Sequence record: OQ992561.1
DNA: 64,000 nt
Reading direction: 5' to 3' (one strand)
The position numbers and the translations under genes were made by a program. The notes under the pieces were generated by a model. The model had not been told where the DNA came from. It searched no databases and saw nothing but the letters and a program-made list of their open reading frames with translations. This document shows, one piece after another, positions 17,728 through 28,476 of the stretch; the stretch's first letter is position 1; each line of letters opens with the position of its first letter.

Positions 17728-17802
17728 TTTCTATTTTCCTATTTTGGTAATACTAAGTTAAACAACGATATGATACTTTACTAATCGTCAATGGAGTTTA
17801 AT

Positions 17803-26566
<8,764 letters not shown>

Positions 26567-26624: not shown

Positions 26625-26930
26625 ATGTCTCTACTTAAAAAGATCGGTCTAGCTTTAATTGGATCAGAAGGACGTAAGGAAGTTTTTGAACAAGAATTAA
26701 CTAAACTATCAAATTCTAATGCAGTTATTGATCAAATGGTGATTAATTTACTGGGTAGTAAGAAGAAGTTAGATGACTTCCTAATTAAAGCTGAAGAAAT
26801 TGATAATAAGAAACTAGGCTTCATTAAAAATCGAGCCGAACTTATTAAACTAGTCAAATCTAAATATTCACAAGACCCTCGGGTTGCCGATGTAGTAGTG
26901 TCACTTTACATTGGTGGTTTCATTTATTGA
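26625..26930 (+). CDS. Hypothetical basic protein
   Basis: ORF with AGGT SD. Confidence 0.7.
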   Translation: MSLLKKIGLALIGSEGRKEVFEQELTKLSNSNAVIDQMVINLLGSKKKLDDFLIKAEEIDNKKLGFIKNRAELIKLVKSKYSQDPRVADVVVSLYIGGFIY

Positions 26931-26937
26931 GGTAAGT

Positions 26938-27630
26938 ATGTCTAAACCTAATCTTGAGTGGTTAGCTTCCTTAGAAAGTAAAGAAGCTAAAAGTACAGTA
27001 GATTCTTCCGATATGGATAATGATCAAAAGGAAGGTAGCGATAAGTCTCAACAAGATGAAGCTACTGAACCTGAGAAGAAAATTACTGCAACTGATGTAC
27101 AAATTGCAATTGAAGAATATGCGCGTATCCGTGCATTAACCACTACTAAAGATCTTCCAACTGACCCTGAACCAGGTGATACTTATCATGTAAATGGGGT
27201 AGATTGGATTTATCAAGAAGATGGTGGATGGGTAACTATGCAAGGTATTTATGGCCATGAACATTTTGATGAAAATGGTCTAAATATTGAAGCAAGTGGC
27301 ATTGACCAGAAATCAGGTGCAACTAAACGTTATGTGGTAACTGGTTATAATGCTCAGACTAACCCAGCTGCTATGCCTGGTGATAACCTGACTGAATGTG
27401 TTATCCTAATGCAGAATGGACTTGTTCCAGAAGTTGGTGTAAATGGCCTAACTGCTGACTGTCTAATTAAAATCGTTAAAGATTTATTTGAAGGTTACCA
27501 AACAGGCCCATTTGCATGTGAAGAGAATCAGGTAGTGATTAATTCAATGGACCGTGCTCTTAGTGCAATTCATCAACGCTTAGTACGGCGTAAAGAACAA
27601 GGTACTGAAGGTACCTATAGTGGTAATTAA
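26938..27630 (+). CDS. Protein with acidic N-terminal leader and C-terminal Tad1-like (Thoeris anti-defence sponge) domain
   Basis: GAGGT SD, ATG 26938; C-terminus MQNGLVPEVGVNG...YQTGPFACEEN...RRKEQGTEGT matches the recalled Tad1 pattern FQxGPxxExGxNG...FQxxxF/YxCREN...RxxxGxEGT. Confidence 0.7.
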   Translation: MSKPNLEWLASLESKEAKSTVDSSDMDNDQKEGSDKSQQDEATEPEKKITATDVQIAIEEYARIRALTTTKDLPTDPEPGDTYHVNGVDWIYQEDGGWVTMQGIYGHEHFDENGLNIEASGIDQKSGATKRYVVTGYNAQTNPAAMPGDNLTECVILMQNGLVPEVGVNGLTADCLIKIVKDLFEGYQTGPFACEENQVVINSMDRALSAIHQRLVRRKEQGTEGTYSGN

Positions 27631-27636
27631 CATATT

Positions 27637-27657
27637 GCCTCCCTTCGGGGAGGCTTT
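27637..27657 (+). terminator. Intrinsic terminator (CCTCCC family, UUCG loop)
   Basis: gcctccc-ttcg-gggaggc-ttt. Confidence 0.85.
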
Positions 27658-27737: not shown

Positions 27738-28232
27738 ATGAACGTTGTAATCTTCACTGCCCGACCTATTGGTTATAAAGTTCCTGGTCCTAACTCCGCT
27801 GTAAATAAGTTTGAACTACATACAGCTAATGCACCTAGTGTATATAGTTCTTCACCAGGATTACCAATTACCACTCAAGAAAGTAGTTGTATCTATACAC
27901 TCACTTCGAATCATGAGCTAGTCGCTGGCATCACCGATAATGATAACTCCCTCATGGTTTTTAGACTAGTACTTGCGTATAATAATGATACAGCTAACTA
28001 TCTAATTAGTACCCAGGTTATTGATAGTAGCGCTGAACTAAAAGGAGTGGAAATCATTAGTGAACTCAGTTTCAGTGTAATTGATACTGGTGCTCATGCG
28101 ATTCGTCGAGTGAATTCGATCGGTGTATGTGAGGCTGTTGCCGCTCGATGGTCGCCAGTTGCAATTGTAGCTGATACTAGTGGTGAAGACTTTGGCGATG
28201 TATGTACCTCATATATCAAATCGAGTAACTAG
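27738..28232 (+). CDS. Hypothetical early protein
   Basis: GAGGA SD; ORF. Confidence 0.75.
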   Translation: MNVVIFTARPIGYKVPGPNSAVNKFELHTANAPSVYSSSPGLPITTQESSCIYTLTSNHELVAGITDNDNSLMVFRLVLAYNNDTANYLISTQVIDSSAELKGVEIISELSFSVIDTGAHAIRRVNSIGVCEAVAARWSPVAIVADTSGEDFGDVCTSYIKSSN

Positions 28233-28476
28233 CATGGTAGATAAAGACAAAACAATGGTAGATTTGGTTAAGTCAGCACATGAGCTGATTTCACATCTTG
28301 ACACACTAAATAAAGTAGCAGCTACCATTAATCTAATTGGTATGCCAGATGCTTTAAAAGAAGTAGTTAAACTCCCCGATGTAAAATGTGTTGTATATAA
28401 ACGACCATTAACTGACAATCTAATTAAGATTGTCTTTAATGATGGTAGTTGCTTTGTAATGAAAGATGTAAATTAA
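28180..28476 (+). CDS. Hypothetical small protein (true start possibly 28235)
   Basis: ORF in operon. Confidence 0.6.
   Translation: MVKTLAMYVPHISNRVTSMVDKDKTMVDLVKSAHELISHLDTLNKVAATINLIGMPDALKEVVKLPDVKCVVYKRPLTDNLIKIVFNDGSCFVMKDVN

Follow-up and report, generated by a model that had tools for sequence, protein, structure and literature searches.

The gp184 orthologue of the phiKZ-like jumbo phage ANB1: a probable virion-borne Tad1 sponge with a capsid-anchoring leader

Introduction

Tad1 sponges sequester gcADPR, the signal of the Thoeris system, in a pocket made of an aromatic residue, an asparagine and two arginines. Some cyclic dinucleotides are probably bound by these sponges as well. 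Structures have been solved for CbTad1 (PDB 7uav, 7uaw, 8smd and 8kbe-8kbh) and CmTad1 (8kbb-8kbd), which are stand-alone sponges expressed after phage entry; their fold starts with an antiparallel beta-sheet and ends with two long helices (Feng and Bondy-Denomy preprint). The pocket common to gcADPR and 2',3'-cGAMP is formed in CbTad1 by F82, N92, R109 and R113, and a second pair of residues, R90 and T97 (R88 and T95 in CmTad1), holds the phosphates of cyclic trinucleotides at the trimer interface; changing either R90 or T97 to alanine leaves binding of cA3 markedly lower (Feng and Bondy-Denomy preprint). CmTad1 is a hexamer, a trimer of dimers, with R88, T95, K96, Q98, E99, M102, W103 and K106 at the interface (Feng and Bondy-Denomy preprint).

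The closest described protein to the one reported here is gp184 of phage phiKZ, a minor capsid protein that belongs to the inner vertex-binding complex and is cleaved by the head protease gp175 (PMC11297242). The modelled part consists mainly of beta-strands and is wedged between gp86 and hexamer 1; each of the five vertex-binding complexes at a vertex holds a single gp184. Most of gp184 could not be resolved, and the piece that was has one end near a verified gp175 site (PMC11297242). Verification of the gp184 cleavage sites is credited in that paper to Thomas et al., Mol Microbiol 2012. Fossati et al. (PMC10449902) showed by western blot that gp184 is injected, and found that it interacts with the inner body and co-fractionates with inner-body proteins. 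More recently, Chan et al. (bioRxiv 2025, 10.1101/2025.11.23.690004) named orf184 'tad1' and reported it to be non-essential, many transposon insertions being tolerated with a competitive index of about 0.35-2.0. The N-terminus of gp184 is described as wedged in the capsid, with the C-terminus liberated by the head protease and injected (10.1101/2025.11.23.690004, PMC13282480). According to Chan et al., who cite Li et al., Nature 2024, no anti-defence gene other than tad1 had been known in phiKZ before (10.1101/2025.11.23.690004), and a 2026 review likewise states that phiKZ Tad1 is injected and adds that it counters both CBASS and Thoeris (PMC13282480). Binding of gcADPR and relief of Thoeris by phiKZ Tad1 are given here as stated in secondary sources that cite Li et al., Nature 2024. 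AntiDefenseFinder also detects Tad1 in phiKZ. The Li et al. 2023 preprint predates the phiKZ work and makes no mention of this phage, and a preprint on sponge diversity contains nothing about phiKZ.

Two other phiKZ head proteins are instructive for the delivery part of gp184. The injected protein gp93, which has been grouped with gp184 (10.1101/2025.11.23.690004), is cut at Glu13/Ser14, and gp162 is cut at both Glu17/Arg18 and Glu137/Asp138. [quoted passage not shown] They differ from gp184 in that their C-terminal parts are helix-rich and of inner-body type, with no sponge, and in that they are anchored by fibre-like, S-shaped segments lying beneath hexamers, whereas the beta module of gp184 sits at the vertex. 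Here we describe the orthologue of gp184 in Pseudomonas phage ANB1, which is very probably a two-part virion protein, with a Tad1 sponge of about 122 residues at the C-terminus and a delivery leader of about 108 residues at the N-terminus.

Results

The ANB1 gene and its surroundings

The stretch of DNA analysed (the window; 64,000 nucleotides) is from Pseudomonas phage ANB1 (OQ992561.1), a phiKZ-like jumbo phage, and the 3.7 kb round the gene are 100% identical to the ANB1 record and 97% identical to phiKZ. The gene itself is an ATG-started open reading frame at 26938..27630 on the + strand, with 230 codons followed by a stop codon at 27628-27630 as read from the translation. A GAGG ribosome-binding site (Shine-Dalgarno sequence) can be read from the sequence at 26929..26932 (+ strand), 5 nt 5' of the ATG, and shares bases with the stop codon of the gene before it. 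An alternative TTG start at 26911 was rejected, as it overlaps that gene's stop and is unnecessary. Three orthologues of phiKZ genes lie upstream on the same strand, supported by the ORFs, the phiKZ annotation and PHROG matches: gp181 (17791-24516; 2241 aa), gp182 (24572-26566; 664 aa) and gp183 (26625-26930; 101 aa). The same order is found in phiKZ, where PHIKZ181 ('tail-associated endolysin'), PHIKZ182 and PHIKZ183 precede PHIKZ184, the counterpart CDS, annotated 'structural protein'. Immediately downstream, the gp182-gp184 gene run ends at a terminator-like GC-rich hairpin, found by a hairpin scan at 27637..27654 (+ strand; 7 pairs, of which 6 are G-C) and with a T-rich tail behind it. The placement given in the initial annotation, after gp181/gp182-like genes and ahead of a terminator, thus agrees with the local gene map. 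From its position among virion genes, the gp184 orthologue is presumably expressed late.

Several features of the neighbourhood may be recorded alongside. A stronger terminator-like hairpin, of 12 pairs, lies at 24524-24551 between the gp181 and gp182 orthologues, and gp182-gp184 may therefore be a transcription unit apart from gp181. The orthologue of phiKZ gp185 (window positions 27738-28476) has 164 aa versus the 184 aa annotated in phiKZ and matches its own PHROG over residues 1-145 only; the DNA alignment to phiKZ splits into two pieces, phiKZ having 61 additional bases over the 3.7 kb compared. No tRNA genes, and no Rfam families at the gathering threshold, were found in window positions 1-64000.

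Comparison of the protein with PDB chain sequences by phmmer shows that 228 of its 230 residues are identical to phiKZ gp184 (PDB 8y6v chain I). The two proteins are of equal length and are placed alike after gp181-gp183, and they differ by two conservative substitutions in the ANB1 protein, at residues 177 and 189. The experiments on gp184 cited above were all done with phiKZ and none with ANB1, and at 99% identity their results should carry over. The feature is therefore already known as phiKZ gp184/Tad1, and every part of the hypothesis in the initial annotation has been published for the 99%-identical protein; the suspicion in the initial annotation that it might already have been noticed in phiKZ proved right. 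Under the match, the gene is nonetheless a 'hypothetical protein' in the ANB1 record, as are the corresponding genes in nearly all phage records among the matches listed.

A Tad1-family domain at the C-terminus

Residues 109-230 (27262..27627, + strand) form the Tad1 domain, a beta-sheet with two long helices that is delimited by sequence matches, a structural model and Foldseek. The C-terminal residues on which the initial annotation had based its proposal of a Tad1-like sponge are present in the translation. When the whole protein was compared with PDB chains using phmmer, the significant matches beyond 8y6v chain I were exclusively Tad1 chains: 8kbb at an E-value of 8.6e-7, and 8kbh, 8kbg, 7uav and 8kbe at 2e-5 to 2.7e-5. 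Identity to CbTad1 and CmTad1 is only 20-25%. A word-indexed homologue search with the C-terminal domain as query returned 2 matches only, and an exhaustive profile search was needed to recover the family, which comprises 4,389 representatives at E ≤ 0.001. From this search an alignment of 91 sequences was assembled, consisting of the window protein and relatives, and the profile built from it matches CbTad1 at an E-value of ∼7e-25, covering residues 8-124 of 125, and CmTad1 at 4.9e-22. By these measures the likeness of the gp184 orthologue to Tad1 is far beyond chance.

The predicted structure points in the same direction. An AlphaFold model from the single sequence had a mean pLDDT of 41 and was discarded; AlphaFold2 with the 91-sequence alignment gave a mean pLDDT of 80.7, with block means of about 84-98 over the Tad1 domain (residues 111-230). 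Within the domain, the strands of this model span residues 115-122, 129-135 and 153-158, and its helices span 173-189 and 195-220. Searched against the PDB with Foldseek, its best 20 matches are all Tad1 structures (TM on target 0.70-0.76, E-values 2.8e-8 to 2.7e-6, probability 1.00), after which comes 8y6v chain I and nothing further that is significant. The BFVD fold matches include phage proteins named 'Acb2/Tad1 hairpin domain-containing'. The profile and Foldseek comparison with Tad1 structures, which the initial annotation had proposed as its check, thus came out in its favour.

Domain databases are less informative. Neither the whole protein nor the domain matched Pfam PF24729 (Acb2/Tad1 hairpin domain) in a direct scan at E-values up to 10, and a precomputed table assigns PF24729.3 to a 96%-identical protein (P0001) and to most relatives, some of the entries being marked 'weak'. 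PF24729 is a short model, with which just 2 of 48 family members attain an E-value of 0.001. An NCBIfam scan of the protein gave no informative match, and its PHROG matches are to families of 'unknown function' only. Taken together, the sequence matches, the predicted fold and the pocket residues described below agree in placing residues ∼109-230 in the Tad1 family, and the naming of gp184 as 'Tad1' in the literature accords with this assignment.

Ligand sites of the predicted sponge

The ligand sites of the solved sponges were mapped by phmmer pairwise alignments, after reconciling the chain and paper numbering for CbTad1 and CmTad1. The four residues of the gcADPR/dinucleotide pocket, F82, N92, R109 and R113 of CbTad1, align with Y187, N197, R214 and R218 of the ANB1 protein, so that all four are shared with CbTad1 and CmTad1, as are the fold and the homology. 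These columns are strongly conserved in the 91 relatives, with an aromatic residue in 90, asparagine in 91, the first arginine in 91 and the second in 86. By contrast, the arginine and threonine that contact cyclic trinucleotides (R90 and T97 of CbTad1) align with a glutamate and an asparagine, E195 (codon 27520-27522) and N202 (27541-27543), and in the 91 relatives the two columns hold arginine in just 8 and threonine in 7. Residues aligned with the CmTad1 hexamer interface also differ in the ANB1 protein, which is suggestive as regards hexamer formation.

The alignment therefore predicts a working gcADPR/dinucleotide pocket without the canonical trinucleotide site, and we infer a ligand range of gcADPR with or without cyclic dinucleotides, excluding trinucleotides. 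Since R90 and T97 are replaced by E195 and N202 and the aligned interface residues differ, the ANB1 protein may not work by the complete mechanism of the solved Tad1 proteins, with its two sites and hexameric assembly. The trinucleotide site was described later and varies within the family, and so it bears on ligand range and not on membership.

It had been suggested at the outset that three kinds of substitution might shift specificity. For the change from CREN to CEEN this idea is sharpened, as the residue replaced is the arginine that holds the trinucleotide phosphates, giving a specific predicted loss. The other two positions are at variable columns: that of K130 holds histidine in 46 and lysine in 22 of the 91 relatives, and that of M158 holds phenylalanine in 71 and methionine in 10.

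Anatomy of the leader

CbTad1 and CmTad1 lack any counterpart of the N-terminal leader of 108 residues that precedes the sponge domain in the ANB1 protein. The leader begins with a short helix leading to the motif S-L-E13, and residues 1-13 (26938..26976, + strand) are, from the motif and the model, a candidate N-terminal propeptide. The S-L-E at residues 11-13 had been singled out in the initial annotation, together with an acidic tract and the stretch P.DP.PGDTY.VNG..W.Y, and all three are there. The acidic tract belongs to residues 14-70 (26977..27147, + strand), which by composition and model are mostly disordered, with one helix at about 51-61; there are 11 D/E versus 6 K/R in residues 14-50, and the block-mean pLDDT of the AlphaFold2 model is about 46-64 over residues 11-60. 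Next comes a small three-stranded beta module at residues 71-105 (27148..27252, + strand; block-mean pLDDT 85-91), the probable capsid anchor. Its motif, P.DP.PGDTY.VNG..W.Y, occurs once, and no second copy was found in the six-frame translation of the window. The module is followed by G-H-E at residues 106-108 (27253..27261, + strand), a candidate head-protease site by its motif; it stands in a low-confidence linker, the pLDDT falling below 50 at residues 105-107.

The two motifs stand at conserved positions: among 20 relatives, 17 have an S/G-x-E motif at the N-terminal column and all 20 have an S/A/G-x-E motif at the junction columns. The capsid structure of phiKZ bears on the same boundaries: in 8y6v chain I no more than 34 residues are modelled. 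Foldseek superposes these on the AlphaFold2 model with 100% identity, a TM of 0.82 and an rmsd of 1.4 Å, and they are probably the beta module at residues 71-105. The verified gp175 site near the resolved piece would then correspond to G-H-E108. Cleavage of gp184 at S-L-E13 as well is probable by analogy to gp93 and gp162, and release of the sponge is probably by a second cut at G-H-E108, besides or in place of the one at S-L-E13. The description of the leader as propeptide-like falls short, as its role goes beyond that of a propeptide to be discarded: it contains the probable capsid-anchoring module, which would stay behind as a minor capsid protein.

The BFVD matches of the model extend to jumbo-phage proteins named 'virion structural proteins', among them one of 321 aa from PhiPA3 and one of 91 aa from Psa21, with identities of 23-30%. 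These matches possibly run through the N-terminal beta module, and the module could be a common capsid-anchoring element.

Leaders of the relatives

The gene order recurs on phiKZ-like contigs 74-310 kb in length (L006 and L007), where positional orthologues with 42-47% identity are encoded. On both of these, a giant SLT-domain protein is followed by a protein of ∼660 aa, small ORFs and the Tad1-domain protein, with thymidylate kinase further on. The orthologues themselves, P0012 (L007:10001-10609) and P0003 (L006:10001-10675), keep the Tad1 domain and the gene order, and their leaders differ from that encoded at window positions 26938-27261. The largest group of relatives, with proteins of about 200 aa, is without the beta module of residues ∼71-105 and keeps both motif positions, near residue 13 and at the junction.

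Among 167 relatives, 44 besides the close ones have N-terminal extensions of at least 45 residues and 20 have C-terminal ones. Six of 48 extended forms (P0079, P0116, P0107, P0072, P0103 and P0044) start with a fragment matching Pfam PhiKZ_MCP, and these Tad1-domain proteins are 346-591 aa long; examples are P0079 (L002:10001-11455) and P0116 (L005:165-1940). The fragment in P0079 corresponds to residues ∼250-332 of gp120, the phiKZ major capsid protein, at the start of the insertion domain. We considered that such N-terminal parts might be copies of the N-terminal arm or propeptide of the capsid protein, and rejected this because of the match to gp120 residues ∼250-332 instead. The contig with the P0079 gene is 252 kb long, and the gene has small ORFs and not a virion module around it.

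Discussion

A simple scheme would account for the features of the protein. The beta module of the leader would wedge beneath the capsid vertex, within the inner vertex-binding complex, and as the head matures its protease (the prohead protease, gp175 in phiKZ) would cut after the glutamate in S/A/G-x-E motifs, likely at E13 and E108. The exact positions E13 and E108 are what we infer from the motifs. The anchor would stay on the capsid wall, and the sponge of 122 residues would be set free inside the head, from which it would pass into the cell together with the DNA and the rest of the ejected head proteins and be present ahead of any phage gene expression. Delivery in a pre-made form in the virion would set ANB1-type proteins apart from CbTad1 and CmTad1, which are made after entry. 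Homology, predicted fold, pocket conservation, leader anatomy and conserved protease motifs were obtained here for the ANB1 gene, and capsid location, cleavage by gp175, injection, non-essentiality and the Tad1 assignment were obtained by others on phiKZ. The initial annotation had envisaged a protein that is packaged in the head, matured by the head protease and injected, and these points are borne out in phiKZ by the presence of gp184 in the 8y6v capsid, its listing among the proteins cleaved by gp175, and the western blot (PMC10449902).

It could be argued that the protein serves chiefly to cement the structure of the capsid vertex and that its Tad1-like domain is a relic or filler without sponge activity, and the fact that only 34 residues are resolved in the capsid could be read this way. 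We regard this as highly improbable. The part seen at the capsid wall is not the Tad1 domain, the gene is non-essential, with many transposon insertions and a competitive index in the range given above, injection has been demonstrated for phiKZ gp184, and the invariance or near-invariance of the pocket residues over 91 relatives argues for selection on ligand binding. A different possibility is that the sponge acts mainly late, as newly made and uncleaved precursor, with the packaged fraction too small to matter. One ordered copy per asymmetric unit would amount to about 55-60 copies of gp184 per head, and at five complexes per vertex, each with a single gp184, a virion offers few binding sites; the position of the gene with virion genes, and thus presumably late expression, would also fit. 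Nonetheless, signalling by Thoeris and CBASS needs to be blocked early, the injected protein is what is said to block immunity (10.1101/2025.11.23.690004, PMC13282480), and the packaged copies may exceed the ordered ones, as gp184 co-fractionates with inner-body proteins. A mainly late role therefore seems unlikely to us, albeit less so than that of a cement, and delivery of a ready-made sponge in the virion is the reading we prefer.

The breadth of ligands bound by such a sponge is a finer matter, and a restricted range would refine the main explanation without displacing it. That the protein binds only gcADPR-type signals, and perhaps cyclic dinucleotides, with a narrower anti-CBASS reach than CbTad1 and CmTad1, strikes us as evenly balanced between being right and wrong. 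In its favour, the residues needed for cA3 binding by CbTad1 align with E195 and N202, arginine is present in few of the relatives, and the aligned hexamer-interface residues differ. Against this, phiKZ Tad1 is given in review literature as countering CBASS as well as Thoeris (PMC13282480), and other residues could build a trinucleotide site.

The predicted lack of the trinucleotide site and the variable leaders of the relatives are what the ANB1 gene adds to the published picture of gp184. We put forward tentatively, as somewhat the less probable outcome, that the phiKZ-type Tad1 is a narrowed sponge, with no trinucleotide site and perhaps no hexamer, and that its leader is an exchangeable cassette for anchoring, cutting and release. 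The cassette is suggested by the positional orthologues, which retain the two protease motifs and swap the anchor module, and by jumbo-phage-sized contigs that fuse the sponge domain to other N-terminal parts, including fragments resembling the insertion domain of the phiKZ major capsid protein.

A sponge that is ready-made in the virion can act before Thoeris or CBASS signalling fires, and pre-loading of this kind is a notable counter-defence for nucleus-forming jumbo phages, which are used both as models and in therapy, although it has already been described for gp184. The practical gain is the annotation of the ANB1 gene and of the matching genes in other phage records. If the leader is indeed an exchangeable cassette, loading virions with signal sponges in advance would be a modular strategy that recurs among phages and not a peculiarity of phiKZ.
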